Shown here piece after piece: positions 3,621 through 64,000 of a DNA stretch of 64,000 bases. A model generated the notes under the pieces. That model saw only the letters and a program-made list of their open reading frames with translations, did not search any database and was not told where the DNA came from. Position 1 is the first letter of the stretch. Every line of letters starts with the position of its first letter. Origin of the DNA: Hemiscyllium ocellatum (Eukaryota); assembly GCF_020745735.1 (NCBI RefSeq), contig NC_083428.1, positions 25,854,001 to 25,918,000 of the forward strand, given 5' to 3'. Both the position numbers and the translations under genes were made by a program.

Positions 3621-5178
3621 ACCATAAGAGCATAGACCATAAGAAATGGGAGTGGAAATAAGGCGATTTGGCCCATTGAATCCACTCTGCCTTACAATCA
3701 TGGCTGATGGGCATTTCAACGCCACTTACCTGCATTCTCCCCGTATCCCTTAATTCCTTGCGAGATCAAGAATTTATCAATCTCTGCCTTGAAGACATTT
3801 ATCGTCCCAGCTTCCACTGCGCTCCATGGCAATGAATTCCAGAGGCCCACTACTTTCTGGCTAAAGAAATGTCTCCTCATCGCTGTTCTAAATTGACCCT
3901 CTTTAATTCTAAGGCTATGTCCACGAGTCCTAGTATCCCCGCCTTTTGGAGACAATTTCCCAGTGTCCACCTTTTCTAAGCCATGAATTGTCTTGTAAGT
4001 TTCTATTAGATGTCTCCTCAATCTTCTAAACTCTAAAGAATATAATCCGAGGATCCTCAGCCGTTCATCATTTCAGGAATCATCCGTGTGAATCTCTGCT
4101 GGATATGCTACAGTGCCAATATGTCCTTCCTGAGGTGTGGGGTCCAAAACTAACACAGTATTCTAAATGGGGCCTAACCAAAGCTTTATAAAGTGTCATT
4201 GCACATCACTGATTTTACATTCGGACCCTCTTGAGATAAATGACAACATTACATTTGCTTTCTTAACCATGGACTCAATCTGTAAGTCAATCTTTAGAGA
4301 ATCCTGTACTAGCACTCAGAGACCCTTTGTACTTTGGCTTCATGAATTTTCTCACCATTTAAAAAATAGCCCATGCCTGTATTCTTTTTTTCCAAAGTGC
4401 AAGACATTTGCTCACATTGAAGTTCATCAGCCATTACTTGGACACTCTCCTAAACTATCCAAATCTTTCTGCAGCCTCCCCACCTCCTCAGAACTACCTG
4501 CCTGTCCACCTAACTTCGTAAGATCGGTGACTTTGCCAGAATGCCCCCAGTCCCTCCATCCAGATCATTAATATATAAAGTGAACAGCTGCGGCCCCAAC
4601 ACTGAACCCTGTGGGACACCACTTGTCACTAGCTGCCATTCTGAAAAAGAACCTTTTATCCCAACTCTCTGCCTTCTATCAAAAAGCCAATCCCTAATCC
4701 ATGCCAGTAGCTCACCTCGAACACCATGGGCCCTCATCTTACTCAGCAGCCTCCTGTGAGGCACCTTATCAAAGGCTTTTTGAAAGTCTAGGTAGATAAC
4801 ATCCACTGGGTTTCCCTGGTCTAACCTACTTGTTACCTCTTCAAAGAACTCTAACAGATTTGTCAGGCATGACCTCCCCTTACTAAATCCATGCTGACTT
4901 GTTCTAATCCGACCCAGCACTTGCAAGAATTTAGAAATCGCATCCTTAATGATGGATTCTAGAATTTTACCTACAATCGAGGTTGGCCTAACCGACCAAT
5001 AATTTTCCATCTTTTGTCTTGATCTTTCTTGAACAAGAGTGTTCCAATCATCTGGGACTTTTATTGACTCCAATGATTTTTGTAAGATTACAACCAATGC
5101 CTCTGCTATTTCTTCAGCCATTTCCCTCAGAACTCTAGGAAGTAGCCCATTGGGGCCAGGAGATTTATCAATTTTTAG
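3621..5178 (-). mobile_element. 5'-truncated CR1 LINE (RT region to 3' tail)
   Basis: ORFs 4510..5121 (QHGF, YLDFQKAFDKVPH, SGVPQGSVLGP) and 3716..4021; accataag-type tail repeats. Confidence 0.95.
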
Positions 5179-5495
5179 TTTAGATTACCTACAGTATGGA
5201 AACAGCCTAACATGTCCACACTGACCCTCTGAAGAGTAACTCACCCAGACCCATTCCCCTACCCTACATTTACCCCTGACGAATGCCCCTAATACTATGG
5301 GCAATTGTAGCATGGCCAATTCACCTGACCCACACATTTTTGGATTGTGGGAGGAAACCGGAGCACCCGGAGGAAACTCCCGCAGATTCAGAGAGAACGT
5401 GCAAACTCCACACAGTTACTCGAGGTGGGAATCGAACTCGGGTTCCTGGCGCTTTGAGGCAGCAGTGCTAGCCACTGAGTCACTGTGCCACCCCC
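5178..5495 (-). mobile_element. HE1-type V-SINE
   Basis: tRNA-like head, V-domain (GGAGTTTGCAC...GGTTTCCTCCCAC) and CR1-like tail on the minus strand. Confidence 0.9.
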
Positions 5496-5504
5496 ATCTT
5501 TTGT

Positions 5505-9999: not shown

Positions 10000-10305
10000 T
10001 GCACGGTGGCTCAGTGGTTGGCAATGCTGCCTCACAGCGCCAGGGACTTGGATTTGATTCCAGCCTTGGGTGACTGTGTGGAGTTTGCACATTTTCCCTG
10101 TGTCTGTGTGGGTTTGTTCCGGTTTCCACCTACAATCCAAAGATGTCCAGGTTAGATGAAATGGACATGCTAAATTGCCCATAGTGTAGGTTATTGGTGA
10201 ATGTGGGGTAGGGGGAATGGGCCTGGGTGAGTTACTCTTCAGGGGAGTGTCGGTGTGGACTTGTTGGGCCGAAGGGCCTGTTTCCAATCTGTAGGAATTC
10301 TAATT
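10000..10305 (+). mobile_element. HE1-type V-SINE
   Basis: GCACGGTGGCTCAGTGG head, V-domain, GGGCCGAAGGGCCTGTTTCC tail. Confidence 0.9.
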
Positions 10306-11074
10306 CTAAAAATATCTCACAGTGTTGCTTTCTGAGGCAAACTGGAAGCAATATTTAAAGGGAAGCCCACATACAAGATTATTGAATCATGAGTATTAAT
10401 GAGTTATTTACCATATGAGATTTGGAACACCTCGATTGTGTCTATCTTAGTTTTTAATTACCCTGTCATAATTTATCACAGATCTTATTTTAAGTACTTT
10501 GATTTAGTCCGAGGAACAGATGATGGATTGGGAACAGCTACAGTAATGGCATCAGTTGTACTGAGGGCCAAGGTTTTGCAGTCCAGACAATTCAGGAGCA
10601 ATTCAAAAAGGGCAGGCCAGATCAATTTCTGGGATTCCTACTCCCATTTCCAGGGCTGACAATTTTCACTAGTTTGGGATACGATGAAAGCAGTGAGCCC
10701 ACACCATACACTCCTGAGCTGGTTGACCCCAGTGCAAGAGTAGGCATCTTCTAGCCTCATGCAATTTTCATGAAGTTAGCTTAACTTCTCTGTAACTGGT
10801 TCACAGACATTCAGGTGAATTGTGAACTATAGTTTGAATTGGGGAACCATTTGAAAAATATGTTTAAAAAGTGCCCTCCGCATACCCAACCCCCATCCAA
10901 CCACTCCCATTAATTTCTCATACATTCCATGTCAACTCAATGGCCACTCATGCCTCCCAACCACTCCTTTTGTTCTTCATAATCAGCATATCACTCAATA
11001 TCAACTCATACCCATTCACCCACTATGCAATATTGTAGAAAAAAATGAGCTGTAAAATAACAATAGCACATGTA

Positions 11075-14035
11075 AAGCCCATATCCCTCCAGACCCTTCC
11101 TATTCATATACCCATCCAAATGCCTCTTAAATGTTGCAATTGTACCAGCCTGCATCATTTCCTCTGGCACCTCATTCCATACATGTACAACCCTCTGCAT
11201 GAAAAAGTTGCCCCTCAGGTCTGTTTTATATTTTTCCCCTTTCACCCTAAACCTATGCCCTCTAGTTCTGGACTCCCTGACCCCAGGGAAAAGACTTTGT
11301 CTATTTATCCTATCCATGTCCCTCATGATTTTGTAAACCTCTGTAAGGTCACCCCTCAACCTCTGACGGTCCAGGCAAAACAGCCCCAGCCTGTTCAGCC
11401 TCTCCCTGTAGCTCAAATTCTCTAACCCTGGCAACATTCTTGTAAATCTTTTCTGAACCCTTTCAAATTTCACAACATCTTTCCAATTGGAAGGAGACCA
11501 GAATTGCACACAATATTTCAACAGTAGCCTAATCAATGTCCTGTAGAGCTGCAACATGACTTCCCAACTCCTGTACTCAATACTCTGACCAATAAAAGAA
11601 AGCATTCCAATCACCTTCTTCACTATCATATCTATCTGTGACTCCACTTTCAAGGAGCTATGATTTTCTTTCCCAAAATGCAGCACCTCGCATTTATCTG
11701 AATTAAACTCCATCTGCCACTTCTTTGCCCATTGTCCAATCTGGTCAAGATCCTGTTGTAATCTCAGGTAATCTTCTTCGCTGTCCACTACACCTCCAAT
11801 TTTGGTGTCATCTGCAAACTTACTAACTGTACCTCTTATGCTCACATCCAAATCAATTATGTAAATGACAAAAAGTAGCGGACCCAGCACCGATCTTTGT
11901 GGCACTCCATTGGTTACAGGCCTCCAGTCTGAAAAACAACCCTCCACCACAACCTTCTGTCTTCTACCTTTGAGCCAGTTCTGTATCCAGATGGCTAGTT
12001 CTCCCTGTATTCCACGAGATCTAACCTTGGTAACCAGTCTCTCATGGGGAAACTTTTTGAATGTTTTACTGAAGTCCATATAGATCACATCTACTACTCT
12101 GCCCTCATCAATCCTCTTTGTTACTTCTTCAAAAAAGTCAAACAACTTTGTGAGATATGATTTCCCATGCACAAAGCCATGTTGACTATCCCTAATCACT
12201 CCTTGCCTGTCCAAATACATGTATATCCTGTCCCTTAGGATTCCCTCCAACAACTTGCCCACCACCGACGTCAGGCTGCTCATTGGTCTATAGTTCCCTG
12301 GCTTGTCCTTACCACCCTTCTTAAACAGTGGCACCATGATGTCCAACCTCCAGCCTTCCAGCACCTCACCTGTGACTATCAATGATACAAATATCTCAGC
12401 AAGAGGCCCAGCAATCACTTCTCTAGCTTCCCATGGAGTTCTAGGGTACACCTGATCAGGTCCTGGGGAGTTTTCCACCTTTATGCATTTCAAGACATCC
12501 AGCACTTCCTCCGCTGTAATCTGGATATTTTGAAAGATGTCACCATCTATTTCCCTACAGTCTATATCTTCCGTATCCTTTTTCACAGTAAATACTGATG
12601 CAAACTACTTGTTTAGTATCTCCTCCATTTTCTGCAGCTCCACACAAAGGCGGCCTTGCTGATCTTTGAGGGGCCCTATTCTCTCCCTAGTTACCCCTTT
12701 GTCCTTAATGTATTTGTAAAAACCCTTTGGATTCTCCTTAATTCTATTTGCCAAAGCTATCTCATGTCCCCTTTTTGCGCTTCTGATTTCCCTCTTAAGT
12801 ATACTCCTACTGCCTTTCTACTCTTCCAAGCATTCACTCGATCTATCCTGTCTATACGTTACATATGCTTCCCTCTTTTTATTAACCAAACCCTCAATTT
12901 CTTTAGTCATCCAGCATTCCCTATACCTACCAGCCTTCCCTTTCACCCTAACAGGAATATACTTTCTCTTGATTCTCGTTATCTCATTCCTGAAGACTTC
13001 CCATTTTCCAGCTGTCCCTTTACCTGCGAATATCTGCCCCCAATCAGCTTTTGAAAGTTCTTGCCTAATACTATCAAAATTAGCCTTTCTCCAATTTAGA
13101 AATTCAACTTTCAGATAGTTTAAATCTAATGGAATTATGGTCGCTGGCCCCAATGTGCTCCCCCACTGATACCTCAGTCACCTGCCCTGCCTTATTTCCC
13201 CAAGAGTAGGTCAAGTTTTGCACCTTCCCTAGTAGGTCCATCCACATGCTGAATCAGAAAATGCTTTCGTACACACCTAACAAGTTCCTCTCTATCTAAA
13301 CCCTTAACACTATGGCAGTCCCAGTCTATGTTTAGAAAGTTAAAATCCCCTACCATAACTAACTTATTATTCTTCCAGATAGCTGAGATCTCCTTACAAG
13401 TTTGTTCCTCAATTTCCCTCTGACTATTAGGGGGGGTCTATAATACAGTCCCAATAAGGTGATCACCCCTTTCTTATTTCTCAGTTCCACCCAAATAACT
13501 TCCCTGGATGTATTTCCAGGAATATCTTCCCTCATCACAGCTGTAATGCTATTCCTTATCAAAAATGCCACTCCCCCTCCTCTCTTGCCTCCCTTTATAT
13601 CCTTCCTGTACCATTTGTAACCTGGAACATTAAGCTGCCAGTCCTGCCCATCCCTGAGCCATGTTTCTGTAATTGCTATGATATCCCAGTCCCATGGTTT
13701 TAACCATGCCGTGAGTTCATCTGCTTTCCCCGTTAGGTCCCTTGCATTGAAATGAATGCAGTTTAATATATTAGTCTTACCTTGTCCCTGCCTGCCCTGA
13801 CTGTTTGACTCTCTTCTGTTCCCAACTGTACCAGTGTCAGATTGATTTCTTTCCTCACTATCTCCCTGGGTCCCACCAACCCCCCACCATCTCCCCCACC
13901 CCTCCCTCCTCCACCTTACTAGTTTAAATCCTCCCGAGCAGCTCTAGCAAATCTCCCTGACAGTGTATTAATCCCCTTCCAATTTAGGTGCAATTTGTCC
14001 TTCTTGTACAGATCACTTCTACCCCAAAAGAGATT
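11075..14035 (-). mobile_element. CR1 (HER1-like) LINE, APE endonuclease + RT, frameshifted
   Basis: 526-aa ORF 11006..12586 carries RT motifs (QHGF, YMDFSK, GVPQRSVLGP, KFADDTK). Endonuclease fragments lie upstream (13359..13571 WVELRNKKG...LYYRPP; 12818..13153). Confidence 0.95.
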
Positions 14036-17475: not shown

Positions 17476-17671
17476 AAAAGTCAGAGGTCACATGACACAG
17501 GCTATAGTCTAACAGGTTTATTTAAAATCACAAGTTTTCAGAGTGCTGTTCCTTTGTCAGGTGCAGTGCTCCAAAAGCTTGTGATTTTAAATAAACCTGG
17601 TGGACTACAACTTGGTGGCATGTATCTTCTGGTTTTGTCCACCCCAGTCCAACACCAGCATCACCACATCA
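17476..17671. mobile_element. Palindromic non-autonomous element with a decayed hammerhead motif (AGCT family)
   Basis: ~70-bp inverted arms. Reverse complement of ~17528-17563 reads cacCTGACAAaggaacagcactctGAAAACTTgtg. Same family as 20160 and 56626. Confidence 0.75.
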
Positions 17672-18104
17672 TCCAGACTACTCAATGCATAATAGGTTAT
17701 AAAGGAGCATGTGAAAAGTTTGGGGGTCCTGTATTGCACAGAGGATTTCTCTCTCCTGGAGTTCTACTGTTTAAAAGCAAGCAATTAATCATCTCAAATC
17801 TTGCTTGTTACCTGTCAGAGCATTGGTTTAATCTAAGTTGTTATCTTTGCAGAGTGAAACATAATATACAAATATAATTCCATTTGTTCACTTTGGTCAC
17901 TTTAAGCCACTAAACTGATGAGGCACATTTATTTTGTTCTTTAATTGCTAAATGCCATTGGCACATATTGGCCTTTCATGGGTGTTGGCTTCTTACATGG
18001 GCAGGACAAAATATTTTCATCAATCATCTTATGTTGTTGATTTCCAAAGAATAGGCCTCCAGTAAATGTGTTGCATAATAAGAGGCCAGAACACTACATC
18101 AAGT

Positions 18105-20159: not shown

Positions 20160-20355
20160 GAGACACCAGTGTTGGACTGGGGTGTACAAAGTTAAAAATC
20201 ACACGACACCAGGTTATAGTCCAATTTATTTAGAAGCTCTAGCTTTCGGAGCACTGTTCCTTCATCACAACTACCTAATGAAGGAGCAGCACTCTGAAAG
20301 CTAGCGCTTCCAAATAAACCTGTTGGACTATAACCTGGTGTTGTGTGATTTTTAA
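20160..20355. mobile_element. Palindromic element with two oppositely oriented hammerhead motifs
   Basis: Arms 20192-20267 and 20276-20355 are reverse complements. Plus-strand motif: acCTAATGAaggagcagcactctGAAAGCTAgc. Minus-strand motif: tgTGATGAaggaacagtgctccGAAAGCTAga. Confidence 0.85.
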
Positions 20356-23300
20356 ATCAGTCCAGATTCCTTCATCTCAGCTTGGTACTTGCATATTTTC
20401 CTCTCCAACATATGAACATTTATATACAGGCGCAAATAAAATAGGAGATAAAGGCACTTTCAGAGCTTCTGTGGGCATGGGGAAGGAATTAAGGGACTTG
20501 CTGGCTGTTTCAGTGCCTTTGGATTAATTGTTAACTTTGGCTTGACTGCCTATTGTCTAATTCATGTTAAATTTTGGACGTTGTGGTCAGGTGATGCCTG
20601 TGGCCATTTGTCATATATCAATGCATCTGGTTCCTTTCTGTCAAACAATCAGTTTACAAGAATCCCTGGTTTAAATTGAATGGTGGGATCCATGTGCTTG
20701 GAAATCCAGTATGTTTGTTACTAAGTGTAAAGGTAGATTGCATGAAGCATTATAACAAAGGTAAGAATAGGTGTAGTGCTGAAACTATACTTAATGAAAA
20801 TTAAGACTTTTGCAATTATACAGAAGTTAGAATTAAATGCCACCTATCCCGAATCATGGAACCTCTCCCATCTATCAATGTTTGATTATGTGAGCACCTC
20901 GAAGAAACAACTACCTTTCACTCATAAACAAAACAATTTGCTAAATAACTTCTGTTAGAATGTTAACTGTTTCTGACTTCTATCTGCTCAAACTGTAACA
21001 ATAAGCTAAAACTGAAAGAATGTGACTTTCAGGATTCACCTCTGCCTGAACTGCTGCAAATATCTAAATGTCATATTCGTGACACAGACAGGGAGCAATT
21101 ACTGACATTATGACTAATTAAAGTCTCTTGGACTGAGTAAAATTTGTGATTAGCTCAAAAGATATTTAGCTTCATCATTCAAATTAATGTTTATTAGCAT
21201 TCAATACATGAGGAGTTGTCAATTTAATGCTGAAGGAATCCTACTCAATTAAACATTGAGTCAGCCGACAAACAAGGAGAAAAGCGGGCTCATACATGAA
21301 AAGCAACATAAAAAGTTTAGTGAAAACCAAACAGATATCTACCTATCAACCCATTGTTGAAATGAGACTCAATGATGAAACAGTAACTTCTAATAGTGCC
21401 AATATAGTGCTGAAATTCATAGGCATAAATTCTATTTCATCACTGAGTACATTAAAGAAATCCCTTTCCTTTTGCAGACACATGTGTAAATAGGTTTAGG
21501 ATGGAATACTATCACTTATGTCAAATTATGTAATTTCCACTTTTCTATCTACTTTTAACAATGTACTGTCACTGTTTAAGGTGATGCAATTTGTCAGGAC
21601 CTGTTTATTGGACAGAAGTAATTGTTTAAATTACTATGGCTCAATGAGATTTTTGTCAATAATTGACTATACCTTGAGATGTACTGAAGATACTGTTAAC
21701 ATGTTTCCATTGTTTTCCAAAAATCTTCTATTACTCCTGGAAAGGATTGTACTTCAGGAGCATTATTGATTTATTATCTAGTCATTTTACAATGCATTTT
21801 GCATTTGGAAATCTGGCTTTCACAAACTGTCCACTAGAAGATGAGGAAAAGCAGGGAAAGGATTACTCAAAGACAAATCAGACTATTCCTTACAATGGTA
21901 ACTTAAAACAGTTCTTGGAATCAATGACTAATTGCTATAACCATGTTTCTGCTATTTTACAATGGGTTTGATGAACTTTTGAATAAGTTACAGCAAGAAC
22001 CAAAATAGATTTTGAAGACTTCTGTCCACAGTAATTGGATGGACAGGAGCACAGAGTTGGAAAATAACCTTGCACAGAATAACTGCCAAAAAATGAATTA
22101 AGTCCAATATTAATTGATGTACTACAGGTTCATCCCCAAAATCTGTTAGCAATACACAAACCGGCTTCAGCCACCAGATTAGAAAAACAATGCCGATTAA
22201 CATTCTGATGCTGGGCTCCCAACCAAAACATTAACCCATTGCACAGAGACAATTTTCCAATTATAATTTGGGATAAGGTACATAATTGACAGCTTCTGCT
22301 CTGAAATAGAAAATTTCGAAAAATAGTTATGAGATGATCGAATTTTTTAAGCCTACCAGTTGTTCTATTTATCATCTGAAAAGAAAATGGCAGCCACAAT
22401 AAGATCACAGTTAATATCACTCTTTAATATATATTTACTGAAACTGACATCATCTTAGTGAAACCTTTAAACTGAACTTTTATGTGACAGAACAATTAGA
22501 GTCTCAATTGTAGGGAAACCACAATAGACCCACTTATTTATTTCAATTAATTAACTTTTCAATTTTTCTGACAGTCCTGCAACTCAACTCTAGCATTTGA
22601 TACTGTGTCATTACCACTAAATCTCTTTAACTCATAAGCATTTTGCTGGGATTAAGATAATTACTTCGAAGTGTGGTGCAGGCATTTGGCTGCTTTATTA
22701 ACCATTTGTTTAGCAGTTGAGTCGAAATGTTGTTGAACAATACCACAGAGATAATCTGTAAATATCTGTATATCTGTACATCTGTAAGTCTCCTGGAAAA
22801 CACCAATTTTTTTTTGAAAAAAAGCAAAAGTCTGCAGATGCTGGAAATCAGAAACAAAAGCAGAAAATTGCTTGAAAGTTTCAACAGGTCTGGCAGCAGC
22901 TGTGGAGAGAAATCAGAGTTCTTAGATACTGTTCTTAGATATTTAGAGACCAATATTTTTCTTTAATTAGAGGAGTGTTTTAGATTTTCAATCAAATCTG
23001 ACTCTTGAAAAGATAAAAATGGATCTTGGTCTCGAGATCATACATTCAAGATAAATAACTTTAATAATAATATGTAGCTGAATAAGAAATGTTTGGAGGG
23101 ATTTGGGCCAACTCAAACAGTGAGACTAGTTTAGTTTGAGATTATAGTCGGCATGGACGGTTGTACTGAAAAATCTGTTTCTGCGCCATTATGACTATAA
23201 CTCAATAACTAGATATAATTTATTTTCTTTCAGTTTTTCATTTGAAGTGATTGTAGCAATATATGTGATGGCAACAAATTGGCATAGGATAAACATATTT

Positions 23301-36049: not shown

Positions 36050-36345
36050 TGGGATGCATGGTGACACAGTGGTTAGCACTGCTGCCTCACAGTGCCAGAG
36101 ACCCAGGTTCAATTCCCGCCTCAGGCAACTGTCTGTGTGGAGTTTGCACATTCTCCCTGTGTCTGCGTAGGTTTCCTCTGGGTGCTCTGGTTTCCTCCCA
36201 CAGTCCAAAAATATGCAGGTCAGGTAAATCAACCATGCTAAATTGCCCGTAGTGTTAGATGTAGGGGAATGGGTCTGGGCGGGTTGCTCTTTGGAGGGTC
36301 GATGTGGACTTGTTGGGCCGAAGGGCCTGTTTCCACACTGTAAGG
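36050..36345 (+). mobile_element. HE1-type V-SINE
   Basis: Complete head, V-domain and tail. Confidence 0.92.
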
Positions 36346-39049: not shown

Positions 39050-39390
39050 CATAGAATCGTAGAATCCTTACAATGTAGAAGCAGGCCATTTGGCCCATCG
39101 AGTCCACAATGATCCTCTGAAAGCACCCCACCCAGACCCATCCTGTGACTTCATCCCTGTAACACTGCATTTCCCACAACTAATCCCCCTAGCCTGCATA
39201 TTCCTGGACAGTGCGGCCAATTTAGCATGGGCAATCTACCCAACCTGCATATTTTTGGATTATAGGAGGAAACCAGAGTACCTGGAGGAAACCCACACAG
39301 AGACAGGAAGACCTTGCAAATTCCACAAAGACAATTGCCTGAGGGTAGAATCGTACCTGGAACCCTGGTGCTGTGAGGCAGCAATGTGAG
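39050..39390 (-). mobile_element. HE1-type V-SINE
   Basis: V-domain and tail. Confidence 0.8.
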
Positions 39391-41052: not shown

Positions 41053-41355
41053 GGGCAGCACAGTGGCACAGTGGTTAGCACTGCTGCCTCACAGCGCCAG
41101 AGACCTGCGTTCAATTCCCGCCTCAGGTGACTCACTGTGTGGAGTTTGCACATTCTCCCCTTGTCTGCGTGGGTTTCCTCCGGGTGCTCTGGTTTCCTCC
41201 CACAATCCAAAGATGTGCAGGTCAGGTGAATTGGCCATGCTAAATTGCTCGTAATGTTAGGTAAGGGGTAAATGTAGGGGTATGGGTGGGTTGCAGGTCG
41301 GTGTGGACTTGTTGGGCCGAAGGGCCTGTTTCCACACTGTAAGTAATCTAATCTG
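41053..41355 (+). mobile_element. HE1-type V-SINE nested in CR1 ORF1
   Basis: Full-length, low-divergence copy with a taatc tail. Confidence 0.95.
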
Positions 41356-44633: not shown

Positions 44634-46246
44634 CATATTACGAGAGATGCTGGAAATCATGAGGATAAGAAAATTAGCATTAAGGTGTTTTATCTAAATG
44701 CTCGTAGTATTCGTAACAAAGCTAATGAATTAATGTCACAAATCATTGTTAATGATTATGATGTGGTAGGCCTCACAGTGACGTGGTAGCAGGGGGTTCA
44801 GGCAGTTAAACATCTAAGGATTTACAACTTATTGAAAAGACAGGGAGACTGGCAGAGGGGGCAAAGTTGCCTTGTTAGTTAAGAATGAAATTAAATCTAT
44901 GGCACCAAATTGCATAGGGTCAGATGATGTGGAGTCTGTGTGGGTGGAGTTGAGGAACAACAAAGGCAAAAAAACCATAATGAGAATTACATACAGACCT
45001 CCCGGCAGTGGTCAGGAGGAGGGGTGCAAGATGTCCCAGGAAATAGGTAAGGTATGTCAGAAAGGCAAGGTCATGGTGATCATGGGCGACTTCAATATGC
45101 AGGTGGACTGGATGAATAATGTTGCTGGTGCATCCAAAAAAAGGGAATTCTTGGAATGCTTACAGGATGGCTTTTTGGAACAGCTTGTGATGGAGCCCAC
45201 AAGGGAGCAGGCTATTCTGGACTTAGTTCAATGTAATGAGCCAGACTTTATAAAAGATCTTAAAGTAAGGGAACCCTTAAGAGGCAGCAATCATAACATG
45301 GTAGCGTTCAGTCTTCAGTTTGAAAGACAGAAGGCAAAATTGGATGTAATGGTGTTACAGTTAAATAAAGGTAATTACAGGGGCACGAGAGAGGAACTGA
45401 TGAAAATCTACTGGTAGCAGAGCCTACTGGGGAAGACAGTTGAGCAACAATGGCAGGAGTTTCTGGGTAAAATTGAGGACACAGTACAGAAGTTCATCCC
45501 AAAGAAAAGAAAGATTATCTGGGGTGGGGTGGGGTGGGGGTAGTGTGGGATTAGACAGCCATGGCTGACAAAGAAAGTCAGGAAATGTATCAAAGAAAAA
45601 GAGAGACTATAAAGTGGCTATGAGCACTGGGAAATCAGAAGATTGGGAAGACTACAAAAACAAACAAAGGATAACAAGGAAATAAATAAGGAAGGAGAGG
45701 ATCAAATATGAAGGTAAGCTAGCCAGTAATATTAGAAATGATAGTAAAAGTTTCTTTCAATACATAAGAAACAAATAAGAAGCAAAAGTAGAAATTGTGC
45801 CTCTCCAAATTGATGCTGGAAAGCTAGTGCTGGGAGATACGGAAATAGCTGAAGAACTTAACAAGTACTTTGTGTCAGTCTTCGCAGTGGAAGACATGAG
45901 TAATATCCCAACAGTTAAGGAGAGTTGGGAGCAGAGTTAACTAAGGTAACCATTACAAAAGAGAAAGTGTTGGGAAAGCTAAAAGGTCCAAAAATCAATA
46001 AATCTCCTAGCCCTGATGGGCGACACCCTAGTGTTCTGAGAGAGGAGGCTGAGCAAATAGTGGAGGCTCTGACTGTGATCTTTCAAAAATCACTGGACTC
46101 AGGGAAAGTCCCAGATGATTGGAAAATCACTGTTGTAACCTCCTTGTTCAAGAAAGGATCAAGACAAAAGATGGAAAATTTTAGGCCGATTGGTCTAACC
46201 ACGGTCGTAGGAAAATTCTAGTATCCATCGGTAAGGATGAGATAGT

Positions 46247-46552
46247 GGGCGACATGGTGGCACGTGGTTAGCACTGCTGCCTCACAGCACCAGAGACCCG
46301 GGTTCAATTCCCGACTCAGGCGACTGACTGTGTGGAGTTTGTACATTCTCCCCGTGTCTGTGTGGGTTTCCTCCGGGTGCTCCGGTTTCCTCCCACAGTC
46401 CAAAGATGTGCAGGTCAGGTGAATTGGCCATGCTAAATTGCCCATAGTGTTAGGTAAGGGGTAAATGTAGGGGAATGGGTTGGGTGCACTTCGGTGGGTC
46501 GGTGTGGACTTGTTGGGCCAAAGGGCCTGTTTCCACACTGTAAGTAATCTAA
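46247..46552 (+). mobile_element. HE1-type V-SINE nested in CR1 ORF2
   Basis: Full-length copy that splits the RT coding region. Confidence 0.95.
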
Positions 46553-47959
46553 TTTCTTAAACTCTTGGAAGTGCGGGGTCAGATTAGAACAAGTCAGCAT
46601 GGATTTAGTAAGGGGAGGTCGTGCCTGACAAACCTGTTAGAATTCTTTGAAGAGGTAACAAGTAGGTTAGACCAGGGAAACCCAGTGGATGTTATCTACC
46701 TAGACTTCCAAAAGGCCTTTGATAAGATGCCTCAGAGGAGGCTGCTGAGTAAGGTGAGGGCCCAAGGTGTTCGAGGTGAGCTACTGGCATGGATTGGGGA
46801 TTGGCTTTCTGACAGAAGGCAGAGAGTTGGGATAAAAGGTTCTTTTTCAGAATGGCAGCTAGTGACAAATGGTGTCCCACAGGGTTCAGTGTTGGGGCCG
46901 CAGCTGTTCACTTTAAATATTAATGATCTGGACGAAGGGACTGGGGGCATTCTGGCAAAGTTCACCGATGATACGAAGCTAGGTGGACAGGCAGGTAGTA
47001 CTGAGGAGGTGGGGAGGCTGCAGAAAGATTTGGATAGTTTGGGAGAGTGGTCCAGGAAATGGCTGATGAAATTCAACGTGAGCAAGTGTGAGGTCTTGCA
47101 CTTGGGAAAAAAGAATACAGGCATGGGCTATTTTTTAAATGATGAGAAAATTCATAAAGCCAAAATACAAAGGGATCTGGAAGTACTACGCCATGATTCT
47201 CTAAAGGTTGATTTGCAGGTTCAGTCCGTGATTAAGAAAGCAAATGTAATGTTGTCATTTACTCAAGAAGGTTGGAATATAAAAGCAGTGATGTGATACT
47301 GAGAATTTCTAAAGCTCTAGTTAGGCCCCATTTAGAATACTGTGTCCAGTGTTGGGTCCCACACTTAAGTAAGGACATACTGGTACTGGAGCGTGCCAGC
47401 GGAGATTCACACGGATGATCTCTGGAATGGTAGGCCTAACATATAATGATGGGCTGAGGATCCTAGGATTGTATTTGTTAGTGTTTAGAAGGTTGAGGGG
47501 AGATCTAATAGAAACTTACAAGATAATGTATGGCTTAGAAAAGGTGGACGCTGGGAAGTTATTTCTGTTAGGCGGGGAGACTAGGACCCTTGGGTATAGC
47601 CTTAAAATTAGAGGGGGTCAGTTTAGAACAGAAATGAGCAGACATTTCTTCAGCCAGAGAGTGGTGGGCCTGTGGAATTCATCGCTATGGAGCACAGTGG
47701 AGGCCGGGACGTTGGGTGTCTTCAAGGCAGAGATTGATGTAGTCTTGATCTCGCAAAGATTTAAGGGCTATGGGGAGAGTGCAAGTAAGTGGAATTGAAA
47801 CACCATCAGCCATGATTAAATGGCGGAGTGGACTCGATGGGCTGAATGGCCTTGCTTCCACTCCTAAGTCTTATGGTCTTTTAGTCTGGACTATGTCCAA
47901 TGCCAGTATATGCTTTCTTAGGTTAAGGACCCAAACCTATTCACTGTGTCCCAGCACTT

Positions 47960-48190
47960 GCCTGGAGTTTGCACATTCTCCCCGTGCCTGCGTGGGTTTC
48001 CTCCGGGTGCTCCGGTTTCTTCCCACAGTCCAAGGGTGTGCAGGTCAGGTGAATTGGCCATGCTAAATTGCCCATAGTGATAGGTGCATTAGTCAGAGGG
48101 TAGCGGGTCTGGATGGATTACTCTTCGGATTGTCGGTGTGGACTGGTTGGCCAAAGGGCCTGTTTCCATATATAGGTAATGTAAACTAAT
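47960..48190 (+). mobile_element. HE1-type V-SINE, 5'-truncated
   Basis: V-domain through tail. Confidence 0.85.
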
Positions 48191-48197
48191 ACCTTGT

Positions 48198-56084: not shown

Positions 56085-56145
56085 TGACGTACCAGATATT
56101 AAAGGATTTATATAAAAGGAAGTGCAACTAGCCTCATACAGTTCT
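56085..56145 (+). promoter_or_regulatory. Putative Pol II core promoter of the mucin-like gene (CRE-like TGACGT, TATA box, Inr-like CAGTT)
   Basis: TGACGTAC at 56085-56092; TATATAAAAG at 56109-56118; CAGTTC about 30 nt downstream; ATG of a signal-peptide exon about 70 nt after the TATA box. Confidence 0.6.
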
Positions 56146-56181
56146 TATTAAGCATCATTGTGTCAATTTCTTGTAAGTAAA

Positions 56182-56251
56182 ATGTTCTGCAAAACGTTTT
56201 GTTCGAAGTCATTGTTATGGAGTATTTTAATTTTGGGGATTTATCTCTCAG
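56182..56251 (+). CDS. Exon 1 (signal peptide) of a secreted or surface mucin-like protein
   Basis: Translates to MFCKTFCSKSLLWSILILGIYLS plus 1 nt (basic N-terminus, hydrophobic core). It ends in a strong donor CAG|GTAAGA. The phase-1 junction splices in frame to the acceptor at 61447/61448, giving ...IYLSDSSA-KTTK with a plausible signal peptidase site. Confidence 0.75.
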
Positions 56252-56625
56252 GTAAGAAAAGTATCCATTTATTTATTGCCCACATGCTCTGGATTGGTTT
56301 CCAGAATATGCAGTATGTTACTTAAATTTAAAATGCAAATTGAAGGTACTTAGAATGTTATCCTTAGAATTTGTTTTCTTTGGTGTAACTTACATGAGAA
56401 CGTTTGCTTTTAACAACAGAAACAAAGTTATTCCTGAGAAATTATTTTTGAGATGCAAAGGATTAAACTTCAAAATTGCTAATTACAATGTCATTTATCT
56501 GACAACATCTGTATCAGTATCCACGTTCAATAATATCATAGAAATAAGTGAACGAAATGATTCAACAATGGATTTGTTGAATTTAAGATAAAAATTCAAA
56601 GTAGCTTAACATGAACTGACATGCA

Positions 56626-56839
56626 TGATGTGGAGGTGCTGGTGTTGGACTGAGGTGGACAAAGTCAGAAGCCACATAACATCAGGTTATAGTCCAACAG
56701 ATTTGTTTGGAATCACATAAGCATTTAGAGCACAGCATCTATGACAGATTAGTGCACCTGCTGAAGGGGCTGCCCTCCTAAAGCTTGTGTGATTTCAACC
56801 AAACCTGTTGGGCTATAACTGGTGTCATATGACTTATGA
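56626..56839. mobile_element. Palindromic element (AGCT hammerhead family), decayed, in intron 1 of the mucin-like gene
   Basis: Inverted arms as at 20160; cacCTGCTGAaggggctgccctccTAAAGCTTgtg at 56755-56789. Confidence 0.75.
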
Positions 56840-57349
56840 ATTGATACAAAATGCAAGATGAAAGTAATGAAACTTTGGCTAATTTTATTGATTAGCTGCC
56901 ATTTAAACAGTTACTCTTTGCTACACTATTTTCTCTGTCAAACACATGGAAAGAGAATATCTGTTCCATAGTATTCTTTTAAATATTGCTTACATTGGGA
57001 TTTTATTGAAGAAAGTAACATTTGTGCCTGAGTGTGTACCTAAAGGCCACAGTATGGGTCAGGTGAAAAAAAAAGTAATTAGAGGAACATATTCACTTTG
57101 AGCTGGGATTAGTTCTTCAATGTTTATTGTCCTCTACCCTTACTCTGTTTTTTCAACTAAGGGTAGGTTACTGCTTCAAATGCACTGATGGGCATGATGT
57201 CATACAGTTATCTTCCAGTCTGTAACTGCTTTCTTCTGTGTTTAACATGAGAGTCTGAAGTAGCATTGCGAACTTCTACAGAAAACATGCTATAGCTAAG
57301 ATGTCCATTGTGTAGTTCATTATTAGTATAATTCCATAAAGATGTAAGC

Positions 57350-57745
57350 ATCAGCTATGGTTTAGAGCAAGCAAACATATTTCCAAAGTCATAAAGACTG
57401 TGGGTTTAAATTCCATTCAGAAGCTTCTGCACGAATTCCAGGCTTACAATCCTGTGAATAACTGAGTGAGTGCTGCATTACTGGAAGTTCCAGCTTTCAG
57501 ATGGAATGCTAAACTGAGGCACAATCTAAACTCTCAAATGGATATTGATGATAACATGGCACTGTTTTAGAGATGGTCCATCATTTAAAATGTATATTCT
57601 CTGATGACTATCAAATTGGTGTTTGTGTGATCCAATTATGCATAAATTAATGTTTTCAACATTATAACATTGACTACTCATCAAAAGTACTAAATTGTTT
57701 GTCCTGAGATTGTGAAAGATACTATGTAAATATAAATCTCTCATT
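57350..57745 (+). mobile_element. Ancient Deu-domain SINE (SacSINE1/AmnSINE1-like)
   Basis: ACTGAGTGAGTGCTGCA...CTTTCAGATG...TAAACTGAGG...CTCTCAAATGGA...CATGGCACT core and an L2-like GTGAAAG..CTATGTAAAT tail. A weaker copy lies at ~14660-14885. Confidence 0.6.
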
Positions 57746-58369
57746 ATCTGGCTGTATCATTGTTCAGATAAAATCAGTTTTAAGGTAATGTTCTGCAATA
57801 ATGCAAATTTGAAAAAAACCAAAATTGAACTAATACCCACTTCTTGACTTTCAAACAGCCCAAAGCATCTCACGAGTAATAAGGTATTTTTTGAGCAATG
57901 GACACTCTTGTATATTAAGAAAGTATGACAAGTTCATCATTTTGGGACCTTTCAATGAATTTAACTTCGAATTTGACTCCACAAAATTCCTTTCTCGAGG
58001 AACCCTTATAAGGACTTGCGATGTGAGCATTTTTGCAAATTATGTGGAATACTGTTTTTCTTCCTTCTAGTTCTACTCAGATCCCCTCCATCAGCCCTTT
58101 CTCTGGTCCTATAGCAGAATTTGTTCGTGGTCTCACCCTGAACTGGAAAATTTGCTCAACACTTATTCCAGTTTTCACAATTTCCTTGCCTTCAACTGGA
58201 GTATTTCCTAATCTCTCCTTTCCCTCACCGTCTCCCTCTCTTCATTTCTGAAAAGGGGCTGTTGAACAACATCCATTATAAACTTACTTTTTCCTGCAGC
58301 TGCCTTGACTACATACATTTATTAATGATCCTACAACATTGTGCCAATTTCTGTGGTAGACATTCATAG

Positions 58370-58665
58370 AAAGAATCCCTACAGTGCAGAAAGAGGCCAT
58401 TCAGCTCATTGAGTCTGCACCAACCCTCCAAATAGCATACGACCCAAATCTACCTACCCAGCCTATCCCCGTAACCCTGCATTTACCATGGCCAATCCAC
58501 ATAACCTGCACATCTTTGGACTGTGGGAGGAAACCGGAGCACGTAGAGAAAACCCATACAGACATGGGAGAAAGTTCAAGCTCCACACAGTCACCCAAGG
58601 CTGAAATTGAATCCAGAAATCCAGGTACTGTGAGGCAGAAGTGTTAATCATTGAGCCACTGAGTC
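58370..58665 (-). mobile_element. HE1-type V-SINE
   Basis: V-domain and head. Confidence 0.85.
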
Positions 58666-59019
58666 ATCTCCAACTCAGCAATCATAGGGCAGAAATTCAA
58701 GATAATTTGAAATTAAAATCAGAGTGCAATTAGGAAAAAAACATTACTAAATGAGTTGTTATGATTGCGAATGCATGTTTTGATGAATGTTGGGTGGATT
58801 ACACAGAAATATTCAAGAGAATTGGCTGTGTCGGGGGGAGACTCATAGGGCTTGATTTGGCATGCTCCAGCCAAGCTTCGTCTTGATGGTGATGCTCCCT
58901 CCAAAAGAGGGACAAAATGTTCCTAATCCAAACATTTACCCCACCCCCACAAATGCGTAATGGTTGTGGGTTGGGCTTGTTTTGGTTGTGTTTACAGTGA
59001 GCAGTGCACCCCATCTCGT

Positions 59020-59760
59020 GGAAAATTCAGCCCATTATGGCATAGGGCACACAAGGAGATTCTACTGCCTATTTAGTCCATGCTCTCTCTTTCTAGATTC
59101 CCATACTTCTGTCCTATGGCATTGTAAATTCATTTCCCTCAAATTCCCGTCCGTTCTCCTTTTGAAATCATTCACCATCCTTATTTCCACCATCCTCATA
59201 GGAGGTGTGTTCTAGGTCACTGACTCTTACTGCATACAAAAATAAGAGTTCTTTCTCAGATCCTACTTGCATTTATTGCCCAAAAACTTAATTCTATGTC
59301 TATTAGCCATATATCATTAATGATGAGTGCAGCTTTTTAAAAAATTTTGTTATTTAAAACCTGTTACAATCTCGAAGACTTCTATCAAATCTCCTCTCAA
59401 TTCCTTTGCTCCAAGAAGAACAAGTCCAGTTGCTCCAAATTACCCGCATCGGTTATCCTTCATTCGAGGGCACTTGTGGTCCAATAGTATGGGAGTATCT
59501 TTTTCTCTCAGTCAGAAGATCCAATTTTAAGTTCCCACTGCTCCAGAATTGTGTAATAACAATTTTATTATCCCTGAAACCATTCTGGTAAATGTCCTCT
59601 GTGTCCTCTCAAGGATTCTCACAGCTTTGCTGAAGTGTGGTAACCAGAAATGGATGCAATGATCAAGCTGTGGTTTAACCAAAGCTTTATGCAGGTTTAG
59701 AATTATTCCCTGTTTCTGCGCTCAAGCTATTCATTTATAAAATCCGAGATTTAATATGCT
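59020..59760 (-). mobile_element. Decayed CR1 3' fragment
   Basis: Reverse complement gives KALVKPQLDHCIHFWLPHF. Confidence 0.6.
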
Positions 59761-60082
59761 TTGCCATCTTCAAAAATCCAAACATTTGCCCTATCTTGAA
59801 AAAGAATTTCACTTTTGCCACTTTCTAATATTCTGTAATTTCATTTGCAGAATTTAACCTGCAACCATTAGAAGGCCTTTTTTTTTACAGCATGATCTCT
59901 ATCTCTCTCAATATCCAAGGGATCCTGGCTTTAGCTCCCCTACCTTTCATCCTTGTTAGAATGGAACTAATCTGCAACTGAACTATCTCCATAATAGTCA
60001 TCCATTATATTTTTCTTCCTGACAATCTCTGGTTCCATTTCATCCAGGCTGATTTCTTTTCATCCTATTGAAGTTTTTTTTA

Positions 60083-60385
60083 ATAGATTAGATTACTTAC
60101 AGTGTGGAAACAGGCCCTTCGGCCCAACAAGTCCACACCGACCTGCCGAAGCTCAACCCACCCATTCCCCTACATTTACCCCTTTATCTAACACTACGGG
60201 CAATTTAGCATGACCAATTCACCTGACCTGCACATCTTTGGACTGTGGGAGGAAACCGGAGCACCCGGAGGAAACCCATGCAGACACGGGGAGAATGTGC
60301 AAACTCCACACAGTCAGTCGCCTGAGTCGGGAATTGAACCCGGATCTCTGACGCTGTGAGGCAGCACTGTGCCACCGTGCCACCC
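60083..60385 (-). mobile_element. HE1-type V-SINE (young)
   Basis: Near-identical to the copies at 41053 and 46247. Confidence 0.95.
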
Positions 60386-61447
60386 ACAAAGTTACTCTCT
60401 TTCAATTTAAAAGTTGTAGTCTATATTGTTCTTTGCTTGTTTCCACTTCTGATCTAACTCTTCAGGTCTAATGTTCACTCTTATCGAAGTGGAATTCAGT
60501 CTACCTCATTTCTCAACCCCTGATCCAGGCAATGCCTCCTTCCTCTTTGCTGGTCAAGAATTTCTCTCAAATGGTCAGAAGTCTATCTTCTCTTTGGCCT
60601 TTTCATTTGATATTTGGGTAATTGAAGTATCCAATATCACCATTTTATAGTTATTGAATAACTCTGTGATTTACCTGGTGGTTTGTTTTGGTAAATATCC
60701 TTGTCAATATTTGGAGATCTTATAGAATTTCCCAGTTGTATTTCACTTCCCAACTCTAAGCAAACAATTTATGAAAAATGAAAAGAATGCAGTACTGTGG
60801 AGAAGTGCAGGAGGTGAAACTAATTGATTGTTTTTTTGAACATCAGGCACAGGCACAATGATGCTTTTATTTAGAACAATGTTAGAAGTCTTGATTTGAA
60901 CTGCCCTTGCATTATCCTGCTTATCTCAGTGTAGCACACCTCTTCCAACAGCTGGCCAGAGCCTCAGTCACACAGATTAGCCCTCTTACCTGTGGAGTCT
61001 GACTGTTATCCTGAATTTGAAAAGAGGTAGCAGAAGTTAATTAGTGGTCCTAGACCAATTAACAAGCCCCTTTGGTGAAAATATCAAAAGTGGATAGGTA
61101 TTAGCAGGATTCAGGACCCTCATTTGATTCCAACATCTGAATCCCTTCCTGAAACTGTCGGCACATATTTCTGCTGTATGGAGGTGGCACTTGGGTAACA
61201 AATAAGATACAATTTTCAAAAACGAACATCATAAAATAGAGCTGCAGAGCATCATTGAATATGATTATCAAAAATAACAAGAAAACCTGACAAGATCAGG
61301 AACATACTGCAGATGAATATTTGACCAATCCCAGCACTACAACGATGTCAAACCTGCCTAACACTGAAAAACAGCTTTTCAAGGCAATAAGGTTTACGTT
61401 TTTAATCACAGAGTATTTTTAACCTTTTATTAATATTGTTTCTACAG

Positions 61448-64000
61448 ATTCCAGTGCAAAAACGACAAAACCAAAAGGAATAAATTCAAGAAGTATTCCA
61501 AAACCAACAGAAAGACTTTCAGGAAATATTCAAATGCCAAATATCATGAAAATAAATCCCACAAATGTTTCAGCTATATTAATGGTTGAGACATCTTTCA
61601 CAGATACACTAAAATCAGATGTGAAGGAAAACATGGCCAGAGGTTTGCAAAACAATGAAAAAAACAGGAAAAGGAAAGGAAAACATATTGCATGCAAACA
61701 CAGATTACATGGCAAGAACATACATTCAACTGATGATCACACACTAAAAGAAAGTCAAAATTATTCAACTAAAAAGGCAAACGTAAAAGAGGAGAAAACA
61801 AGTTCAACAAGGTTGTTTACAGTTAAACAAAAAGACAACAATCTGTCAAGTAAGCCACAACCAAACTTGAAACAATCATCCTCAGCAAATACTCTACCAA
61901 CAAAAATAATGGAGACATCCTCAACAAATACTCCAACATCAAAACTAATGGAAACATTCTCGACAGCTACTCAAACACTGAAAATGAAGCAAAATATTCC
62001 AACGTCAAAACTGGTGGAATCATCTTCGACAAATACTCCAACACCAAAAATAATGAAAACATCATTGACCAATACTCTTACACCAAAATGGATGGAAACA
62101 TCATTAACCAATACTCCAAAAATGGTGGAATCATCCACAATAAATACTCCAACTCCAAAACTGGTGCAAACATCCTCAACAAATACTCCAACACCAAAAA
62201 TAATGGAAACATCCACAAAAAATTCTCCAACACCAAAAATAATGGAAACATCATTGATCAATACTCCAACATCAAAACTGGTGGAAAAATCATCGACTAA
62301 TACTCCAAAAATGGTGGAATCATCCACGACGAATATTCTAACACCAAAAGTAAAGGAAACATCATCAACCAAGACTTCAACATCAAAAATAATTGAAGCA
62401 ACCTCATCAAATACTCTATGGCCAAAAACAGTAGAATTATTCTCAACAAAGACTCCAACAACAAACTTAATAGAAACAATCTCAACTAATTCTCCAACTC
62501 AGAGAGTAATAGAGTCTTCATCAACAGAAGCTCCAACAGCAAAATTGGCAGAAAATCCATTGAAAAATTCCCCAACAACAAAAGGAAATGGAAATCGAAA
62601 AGGTAAAATTACACGATGTAAAGGCGTACATGGAAAAAATACACAAGCTGTAAAGGCTTCAACAATAAGTGTAAAATTGGACAGATCACCGTTAAACTCA
62701 CCAACACCAAAATGGGCAGAATCATCCTCAACAAACTCTCCAATATTGAAAATGATGGAAACGACCACAACACATACTCTAATACCAGAAATGGTGAAAT
62801 CATCCTCAATGAATAATCCACCATTAAGTGTGGCGAAAACATCTTCAAAAAATACTTTAACACCAAAATTGATGGAAATGTCCTCAACAAATACTCCAAC
62901 ATCAAAACTAATAGAAATATCCACGACACCAAAAATGATGGAATCAATCTTGTCAATTACTCCAACACCAGAAATGGTGAAATCATCCTCAAAAAATTCT
63001 CCAACGTCAAAAGTATTGGAAGAAATCCCAACAAAAACTTCAATACCAAAAGTGGTGGAACCATTCTCAACAAATACTCCAACATCAGGAGTGTTGGAAA
63101 CATCTTTGACAACTACTCAAACACTGAATATAATGAAATCATCTTCAAAAAATACTCCAAGACCAAAAATCATGGAATCATCCTCCACAAGGACTCCAAT
63201 GTTGAAAATGATGGAATCATCAACCACAAATACTCTAACACCAAAATTTGTGGAAACATCCCAAACAAATACCGCAACACCAAAAATGGTGGAAAGATCC
63301 ACAATAAATATTCCAACACCAAACATGGTACAGACATCCACAATAAATACTCCAACACCGCAAATGGTGGAATCATCCACGACAAATACTCCAACTCTGA
63401 AAATGAAGGAAACATCATCAACCAATACTCCAACAAAAATAATTGAAGCATCCTCGACAACTACTCTAAGGCCAAAAACTGTAGCATTATTCCCAACAAA
63501 GACTTCAACAACAAACATAATAGAAACATCCTCAACTAATTCTCCAACCCAGAGAGTAATAGAGTTATCTTCAACAAAATCTCCAACAACAAAATTGGCA
63601 GAAAATCCATCGAAAAATACCATGACAACAAAAGGAAATGGAAATCGAAAAGGAAAACCTACTCAGTGTAAAGGTGTACATGGAAAACCTGTAAAACCTA
63701 CAAAGGTAGCAACAACACGAGTTATGTTGGACAGATCTCTGTCATATTCACCAACGCCAAAATGGGCAGAATCATCCTCAACAAATTCTCCAATATTGAA
63801 AATGCTGGAAACAACCAAAACATATACTCCAACACCAGAAATGGTAGAAACATTCACAACAAATACTCCAACATCGAAAGTTGTGGAAACATCCTCAACA
63901 AGCACTCCAACACCAGAAATGGTGGAATCATCCTCAACAAATACTCCTACATTGAGAGTGGTGGAAATATCTTCAACAAATACTCTAACATCAAAAGTGG
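61448..64000 (+). CDS. Large exon of a Ser/Thr/Pro-rich tandem-repeat (mucin/proteoglycan-like) protein; runs off the window end
   Basis: Acceptor ttattaatattgtttctacAG. I read frame +1 codon by codon from 61450 to 63999 and found no stop (850 codons): SSAKTTKPKGINSRSIPKPTERLSGNIQMPN..., then degenerate 13-aa repeats like TPKMVESSSTNTP. It is absent from the ORF track, probably because no stop is reached inside the window. Confidence 0.88.
61861..64000 (+). repeat. Coding minisatellite, 39-bp unit (about ACACCAAAAATGGTGGAATCATCCTCAACAAATACTCCA), with a ~1050-bp higher-order repeat
   Basis: Dozens of degenerate 39-nt units whose indels are all multiples of 3. The block at ~62308-62790 is echoed at ~63361-63840. 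Confidence 0.9.

Follow-up and report, generated by a model that had tools for sequence, protein, structure and literature searches.

The window, i.e. the whole 64,000-nucleotide stretch of shark DNA analysed here, holds at its 3' end a candidate gene on the forward strand, of which two exons are visible and which runs off the end of the stretch. As read from the sequence, a CRE-like TGACGTA (56086-56092) and a TATA-box-like TATAAAAG (56111-56118, 64 nt 5' of the ATG) precede a start codon at position 56182, which has an A at -3 and is preceded at 56149 by a stop in the same frame. The 70-nt coding part of exon 1 (56182-56251; 23 residues plus one base) ends at the donor CAG/GTAAGA. Its product resembles a signal peptide, opening with MFCKTFCSK (net charge +2), which is followed by an uncharged hydrophobic core of 13 residues, with S-S-A preceding the likely cleavage site. 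The signal-peptide call stems from a heuristic of our own, set after the candidate had been seen, and not from SignalP; across the plus strand of the entire 64 kb, no ATG exon other than exon 1 combines a signal-peptide-like product with a donor match of at least 7/9, and exon 1 ends in phase 1, as the junction requires. The top Kyte-Doolittle 19-residue window of the protein likewise falls within exon 1, and no hydrophobic segment was detected after residue 25 in the 850 residues visible past the signal peptide.

Intron 1 (56252-61447; 5196 bp, GT...AG, phase 1) contains interspersed repeats at approximately 56622-56842, 58369-58675 and 60079-60385, which self-BLAST matches to many further places in the window. 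For the exon flanks no such copies were seen, the promoter/exon 1 and acceptor/head regions each being single-copy within the window. A pyrimidine-rich tract leads up to the acceptor at 61446-61447 (ttgtttctacag/AT), and with phase 1 on both sides the spliced product reads ...YLS-D-SSAKTTK. An alternative acceptor at 61453-61454 was discarded because it is out of frame. Exon 2 (61448-64000) is open to the window end, with 850 full codons from position 61450. An earlier note on this DNA had described the TATA box, the 70-nt signal-peptide-like exon, the 5196-bp GT-AG phase-1 intron, an in-frame joining of the two exons (YLS-D-SSA-KTTK) and a second exon open for at least 850 codons. All of these are found where the note had placed them, with donor and acceptor (61447/61448) matching in phase and not a single stop from 61450 to the window end. 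The gene is also, as had been pointed out, absent from the list of open reading frames, only because that list leaves out frames running past the window end.

The predicted protein opens with a signal peptide and continues in three or more units, each consisting of a spacer plus an array of 13-residue repeats, with a super-repeat of approximately 350 residues. Copy 1 of the spacer (61450-61875; pI ~10.3; three N-x-S/T sequons) has a polybasic core KNRKRKGKHIACKHRLHGK at ~61657-61722 and its Cys codon at 61693-61695, the only Cys in the first 150 mature residues. The earlier note had ordered the protein as signal peptide, basic head of ~140 residues and 13-residue PTS repeats; the order stands, but the head is no distinct domain, being instead a diverged first copy of the spacer that aligns to copy 2 with 30% identity over 103 residues (BLASTP, E 3e-7) and also in a three-way alignment. 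The protein is therefore repeat-built from the signal peptide onward. Array 1 (61877-62361) is made of 13-residue units with in-frame variants of 9 and 11 residues, and has the consensus (M/I/V/L)(V/M/I/L)-E-(T/S)-S-S-T-N-T-P-T-P-K. Spacer copy 2 (62362-62742; Cys codon 62617-62619) starts with degenerate 13-mers and continues into a non-PTS core, GNGNRKGKITRCKGVHGK...DRSPLNSPTPKW (~62581-62724), after which array 2 (62743-63411) again consists of 13-residue units. Spacer copy 3 (63412-63792; Cys codon 63667-63669) lies exactly 1050 nt (350 codons) 3' of copy 2, with which it forms the direct repeat D3 (83% identity), and array 3 (63793-64000) is cut by the window end. The part shared by copies 2 and 3 aligns without gaps over 588 nt, at 67-93% nucleotide identity (mostly 82-93%) in sliding windows. 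The repeat period is 39 nt (13 residues), in ~44 units that all lie in one exon and in which E3, S5, T7, N8, T9, P10, T11 and K13 are conserved. Each spacer carries one lone Cys inside the polybasic motif N-R-K-G-K-x-T-x-C-K-G-V-H-G-K, where N-R-K-G-K matches the X-B-B-X-B-X heparin-binding pattern. AlphaFold, run on the shallow three-copy spacer alignment, returned a mean pLDDT of 48, a pTM of 0.11 and no secondary structure, a prediction that fits a disordered spacer.

Ser and Thr account for 34% of the 874 visible residues and for 37% of the repeat part, where Pro reaches 9.5% overall and 8-12% in most 100-residue windows. Among the 262 Ser/Thr of the repeat part, Pro is located at +3 in 43 cases, at +1 in 48 and at -1 in 33. 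Thr with Pro at +3, +1 or -1 is a favoured acceptor context of GalNAc-transferases, and T7, T9 and T11 of the unit all have Pro at one of these positions. The mucin-like PTS composition reported in the earlier note is borne out by these figures. It is leaner than that of classic PTS domains, with M/V/I/L/F at ~20% of the repeat residues and Ser+Thr below 40% in most 100-residue windows. Functional mucins have been defined by Pajic et al. (2022) through a Thr+Ser content of >20%, exonic tandem repeats with clustered Pro/Thr/Ser and a signal peptide, and further through >4% predicted O-glycosylation sites using SPRINT-Gly/NetOGlyc (PMC9417175). Judged by sequence, the shark protein shows the first two of these four features, with Thr+Ser at 34% of the visible residues and ~44 tandem units with Pro/Thr/Ser clustering in one exon, and its putative signal peptide would be a third.

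With E<=1 as cut-off, Pfam recognised no family in the 850 residues beyond the signal peptide, in agreement with the earlier statement that N-terminal VWD and somatomedin-B domains are not visible, which thus holds over the visible exon 2. A phmmer search with the 150-residue head against 1.84 billion representatives gave zero matches, as did word-indexed searches for which the queries were the head, the 196-residue super-repeat core and the spacer region. The protein libraries numbered 5.8 billion and 1.84 billion, and the word-indexed searches used length filters of 467-1487 and 108-343 residues, by which very long models might go unseen for the spacer, not for the head. None of the searched protein catalogues includes the sequence. 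Features of the ESM Atlas scored 0.79 at best, a value that its own calibration equates with chance. Nothing reached gathering score when the gene region was scanned for Rfam families and tRNAs, and no publication on a shark protein of this kind turned up in a literature search. The upstream 56 kb offer no marker gene for synteny, their stop-to-stop frames being LINE reverse transcriptase/endonuclease fragments or Pfam-blank.

Comparison with known systems nevertheless reveals likenesses of form. The orphan secreted mucins MUC7 of mammals and MUC10/Prol1 of rodents, which are devoid of VWD and SEA domains, begin with a signal peptide, putative in the shark protein, and share with the latter PTS tandem repeats and an N-terminal part that is short, basic and Cys-bearing; in MUC7 this part directly follows the signal peptide and precedes the repeats. 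Their genes are located in the SCPP locus, reportedly missing from cartilaginous fishes. This class of mucins is set by function and composition, not by descent, and no sequence relationship to either member was found; the shark protein is moreover far longer (more than 874 residues and still open) and repeats the basic Cys part every 350 residues. Rodent MUC10 has exonic repeats of 39 bp/13 residues (PMC9417175). With the gel-forming mucins (MUC2/5AC/5B/6/19) the protein shares PTS arrays that alternate with Cys-containing non-PTS modules in a beads-on-a-string super-repeat, and possibly disulfide-mediated multimerisation, whereas their N-terminal VWD (D1-D2-D'D3) is not seen and the signal peptide leads straight to a spacer. 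Their CysD modules span ~110 residues with 10 Cys, in contrast to the single Cys and lack of a predicted fold in the shark spacer. Any counterpart of their C-terminal cystine knot/VWC, or of the hemopexin end of proteoglycan 4/lubricin, would fall past the window end. In proteoglycan 4/lubricin, too, short Lys/Glu/Pro/Thr repeats form a long array within one exon, and the product is a secreted, lubricating bottle-brush comparable to the form we infer here, but its repeat unit is different and the two somatomedin-B domains after its signal peptide have no counterpart (Pfam blank; one Cys in the first 150 mature residues).

The open frame of exon 2 is beyond chance, with 0 stops in 850 codons against ~53 expected from base composition, while the other five frames of the exon contain 8-91. 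Antisense coding was rejected because the antisense frames carry 8-91 stops. The frame might still have been inherited from a stop-free 39-nt unit that was recently expanded, in which case the locus would be a coding-looking minisatellite or a decaying pseudogene, exon 1 as well as the splice sites would be there by coincidence and no functional protein would be made. The blank homologue searches suit this explanation, as does the antisense frame with only 8 stops, which indicates that the repeat composition permits long open frames; so does the comparison of the super-repeat copies, where dN/dS is 0.84 (bootstrap 0.58-1.25), not distinguishable from 1, and the differences are spread evenly across codon positions. 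The ratio gives no significant sign of purifying selection between the copies; only the 21-codon basic Cys core, with too few sites, looks lower (0.33). Amino-acid constraint is weak; only frame and composition look maintained. Against a mere expansion, however, the non-repetitive head is open as well (first 142 codons, open in 0/20,000 shuffles), and the array units, although 18% diverged on average from their consensus, include none with a stop, when a neutral-decay simulation expects 12.6 stops and never reached zero in 5000 runs. Between the super-repeat copies, 125 of 588 aligned bases are different, with neither a gap nor a stop although 4.7-5.4 stops would be expected (P(0) = 0.003-0.007), and all length variants of the repeat unit stay in frame. 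By our own screen, finally, a phase-matched signal-peptide exon with consensus donor and TATA box is met only about once per 64 kb per strand, and we regard the minisatellite or pseudogene explanation as decidedly improbable.

A more substantial possibility, if still short of an even chance, is that the locus represents the unannotated N-terminal part of a conventional transmembrane mucin from one of the known families (MUC4-, MUC3/12/17-, MUC13- or MUC16-like), with SEA/NIDO-AMOP-VWD/EGF/TM exons downstream of the window. To our knowledge, periodic one-Cys basic spacers are not a described feature of these families, which speaks against this assignment, as does the lack of a visible flanking marker gene, the upstream 56 kb being LINE debris. 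The gene layout on the other hand agrees with it: in the SEA/EGF-type mucins (MUC1, MUC3/12/17, MUC4, MUC13, MUC16), a signal-peptide exon is followed by a very large exon with the whole PTS domain, a standard mucin arrangement that is found here too and is often missing from gene predictions; for chicken Muc4, genome sequence was needed to reconstruct the N-terminal signal sequence along with most of its PTS domain (PMC1552070). VWD or SEA domains occur in nearly all mucins (PMC1552070); SEA, NIDO/AMOP/VWD, EGF and TM are absent from the visible 874 residues and would lie beyond the window, at whose end the frame is still open. Because the front ends of such mucins are often missed by annotation (PMC1552070), novelty is not shown, and the blank homologue searches say little either way, since PTS sequences are not conserved. 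Membership of a transmembrane family is compatible with the reading we prefer; it would remove the claim to a lineage-specific, unnamed gene. Alternatively, the product could be a secreted structural or adhesive repeat protein (egg-envelope, cement or matrix) rather than mainly a glycan carrier, its K-phi-phi-E ... T-P-T-P units acting via the peptide. The hydrophobic pair, the Glu and the Lys are kept in every unit, and ~20% hydrophobic residues with Ser+Thr at 37% are atypical of a pure PTS domain; yet the Pro-flanked contexts of T7, T9 and T11 are those favoured by GalNAc-transferases, and folding of one spacer predicted neither secondary structure nor a fold, leaving a structural or adhesive role unlikely.

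We therefore favour, as likely though well short of certain, the reading that the window holds the 5' part of a real shark gene for a disordered polycationic mucin-type repeat protein with a putative signal peptide. It is probably a genuine mucin-like gene, be it an orphan or the N-terminal, unannotated portion of a membrane mucin. As its far end is outside the window it cannot be named, and the earlier view that identity needs the C-terminus remains valid, the exon 2 frame continuing past the window end. For this gene we propose the following mode of operation. A TATA-type promoter would drive a short first exon encoding a cleavable signal peptide, the phase-1 intron of 5.2 kb with its ordinary interspersed repeats would be spliced out, and a single very large exon would encode the disordered polycationic repeat protein, which may then enter the secretory pathway. 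There, the Pro-flanked Thr/Ser of each 13-residue unit would be densely O-GalNAc glycosylated, giving an extended bottle-brush chain of mucin type, while the periodic basic single-Cys spacers would presumably remain less glycosylated. The spacers could thereby act as points of interaction or cross-linking, through intermolecular disulfides or through binding of polyanions, e.g. sulfated glycans. A bolder and rather doubtful version sees in the protein an orphan mucin specific to cartilaginous fishes that builds a network without VWD, CK, CysD or SEA domains, a lone polybasic Cys every ~350 residues cross-linking it by disulfide and charge, within a gel or mucus of the shark, either with itself or with sulfated glycans.

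By itself, an orphan PTS gene seen only in part would be no surprise to specialists. Publications on mucins of cartilaginous fishes mostly concern gel formers of the MUC2/5/6 type (PMC4948705; PMC10707392), and the locus described here is a concrete example of giant repeat exons that escape gene catalogues. Its periodic basic single-cysteine spacer constitutes a testable design feature for cross-linking. If expressed, the gene would be one more case of mucin-type proteins arising repeatedly via exonic repeat expansion and not by descent.

We propose that the + strand of the window's final 8 kb probably holds the real start of a gene for a secretory-pathway, densely O-glycosylated and polycationic mucin-type repeat protein. 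Direct support comes from a kept reading frame, phase-matched splice signals, a first exon resembling a leader, the way the repeats are organised, and the residue composition. The TATA box, signal-peptide-like exon and in-frame splice described in an earlier note are all present: a TATA-like TATAAAAG read in the sequence at 56111-56118, a 70-nt leader-like coding stretch (56182-56251) opening with an ATG that has A at -3 and an upstream in-frame stop at 56149, and ending in the donor CAG/GTAAGA, and a 5196-bp intron whose acceptor (61447/61448) follows a pyrimidine-rich tract (ttgtttctacag/AT). The intron is in phase 1 on both sides, the junction reading ...GIYLS-D-SSAKTTK, and signal-peptide coding sequences are commonly closed by an intron of this phase. 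On the Kyte-Doolittle scale the leader reaches a 19-residue mean of 1.44, against at most 0.79 past residue 25, and such windows detect no hydrophobic segment beyond that residue in the visible protein. A screen of all 64 kb, covering either strand, looked for ATG-started pieces of 45-160 nt that end in a donor matching at least seven of nine consensus positions and whose product begins with positive charge and continues into a hydrophobic core free of charged residues; under these criteria, chosen after the candidate was already known, one piece per strand qualified, that on the + strand being exon 1. It lies 5.2 kb upstream of exon 2 in the single fitting phase of three, and the promoter/exon 1 and acceptor/head stretches are single-copy within the window. 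A CRE-like TGACGTA (56086-56092), some 20 nt ahead of the TATA-like box, matches, by eye, 7/8 of the palindromic cAMP-response element.

The long exon missed by the ORF track was likewise confirmed: from 61450, exon 2 runs for 850 codons without a stop and is still open where the window ends, the earlier claim having been at least 850, and the sole cause of the miss is that the mechanical ORF list drops ORFs running off the window end. Because the region is 45% A, stops should be frequent, with ~53 expected per 850 codons and 8-91 in the other five frames. A stop-free unit can pass its openness to an array, and three tests independent of such inheritance were therefore applied. The non-repetitive first 142 codons are open, against 0/20,000 shuffles of them, the two other sense frames having 7 and 9 stops there. 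Mean divergence from the consensus was 18% across 26 in-register units, and the same amount of random change on a clean array gave a mean of 12.6 stops and never zero (5000 runs). Two 1050-nt super-repeat copies align ungapped over 588 nt with 125 differences, and 125 simulated substitutions of the observed spectrum in either copy gave 4.7-5.4 stops, with P(0) = 0.003-0.007. From these tests, and since every unit-length variant (9 or 11 residues in place of 13) is in frame, the exon 2 reading frame is maintained. In the repeat exon the mechanical list shows nothing but three ORFs on the opposite strand (61971-62372, 62499-62924 and 63117-63623, - strand), 133-168 aa long and with much V/F/G/D; as genes they were rejected as by-products of the repeat's composition, the antisense frame in question having just 8 stops per 850 codons.

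The 13-residue PTS repeat previously noted occurs in 44 copies with the consensus (M/I/V/L)(V/M/I/L)-E-(T/S)-S-S-T-N-T-P-T-P-K, of which 34-36 retain E3, S5 and T11, and 29-30 retain T7, N8, T9, P10 and K13. Overlying these units is a 350-codon super-repeat, detected as a direct repeat with an exact 1050-nt offset (83% identity over 300 nt), with 67-93%, mostly 82-93%, identity in sliding windows of the shared part. The section of it that departs most from PTS character is a polybasic, one-cysteine core (GNGNRKGKITRCKGVHGK in copy 2, GNGNRKGKPTQCKGVHGK in copy 3), and the head carries KNRKRKGKHIACKHRLHGK. The basic stretch of the ~140-aa head put forward earlier is thus present, whereas its standing as a separate N-terminal domain did not hold: since 103 residues align with a spacer at 30% identity (E 3e-7), and a three-way alignment can also be made, the head is the first and most diverged spacer copy. 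The visible layout is accordingly signal peptide, spacer 1 (61450-61875), array 1, spacer 2 (62362-62742), array 2, spacer 3 (63412-63792), array 3 and onward, with exactly three cysteines in the mature part, one per spacer (codons 61693, 62617 and 63667). Between super-repeat copies, differences are spread evenly across the three codon positions and dN/dS is 0.84 (bootstrap 0.58-1.25), with a lower value of 0.33 in the 21-codon basic Cys core, where sites are too few to count. Constraint thus falls short of a clean purifying-selection signal; frame, composition and unit pattern are preserved rather than exact residues, as is usual in mucin repeats.

The repeat part contains 37% S+T, 9.5% P and ~20% hydrophobic residues, with a net charge of ~+36 and a pI near 10. 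It is leaner in S+T than classic PTS domains, most 100-residue windows lying just below 40%. The unit places Pro at +3, +1 or -1 of T7, T9 and T11, contexts that GalNAc transferases favour. The three N-x-S/T sequons all lie in spacer 1, the repeats having none because the unit N always precedes T-P or S-P. A Pfam scan of the exon 2 product detected no domain, and AlphaFold on the shallow three-spacer alignment gave a mean pLDDT of 48, a pTM of 0.11 and no secondary structure, a prediction consistent with disorder.

With neither an N-terminal VWD nor a somatomedin-B domain found by Pfam in the visible protein, in agreement with the earlier note, the candidate does not fit the gel-forming mucins or PRG4. 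In phmmer, the head gave no match at E<=0.001 among 1.84 billion representative proteins, and as not even a self match appeared, no catalogued protein holds this exon. Word-indexed protein searches with the head, the spacer region and the 196-aa core returned nothing, and the best ESM Atlas feature score, 0.79, is chance level by the tool's own rating. A signal exon followed by one giant PTS exon is the typical start of an SEA/EGF-type membrane mucin gene, and the front halves of such genes are often absent from gene predictions (PMC1552070); that the candidate is such a front is a serious possibility, if somewhat short of an even one. A similar share falls to an orphan secreted mucin, working like MUC7 and MUC10. 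Rodent MUC10 likewise has repeat units of 39 bp, and three of the features required of lineage-specific mucins (four in total) are found here, namely T+S content (>20% being required), repeats within an exon, and a concentration of PTS residues in them (PMC9417175). That the exon is a dead repeat ORF is improbable given the maintained frame.

Intron 1 (56252-61447) holds three dispersed repeats (56622-56842, 58369-58675 and 60079-60385), each occurring many times in the rest of the window, the content of an ordinary intron. The one at 56622-56842 is a ~220-bp element sharing 70-71% identity (90% across a 40-nt stretch) with relatives at 17478-17675 and 20169-20357; Rfam assigned no hammerhead or other family to the three copies at gathering score, the intron copy giving sub-threshold hairpin-type matches only. 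The other two belong to a SINE-like family of at least 10 copies on both strands (others near 5250-5500, 10005-10300, 36060-36345, 39208-39388, 41061-41354, 46256-46561 and 47963-48191), 70-92% identical in longer alignments, with one 62-nt piece reaching 100%. The 56 kb upstream of the gene look like transposon debris, comprising ORFs without family match and LINE reverse-transcriptase/endonuclease fragments (RVT_1, Exo_endo_phos; 4513-5184, 11009-12604 and 13362-13943 on the - strand, 44836-45414 and 46553-47293 on the + strand), with no recognisable host gene usable as a synteny anchor.

In the gene start proposed here, the gene would be transcribed, the signal peptide cleaved from the product, the product O-glycosylated, and the spacers would have some role in the protein. 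PTS genes restricted to one lineage come as no surprise, and in this incomplete candidate gene only the basic spacer with its single, periodically recurring Cys might be unusual. As a lead, its lone cysteine and X-B-B-X-B-X-type basic motif suggest that the spacers may form disulfide or polyanion cross-links.
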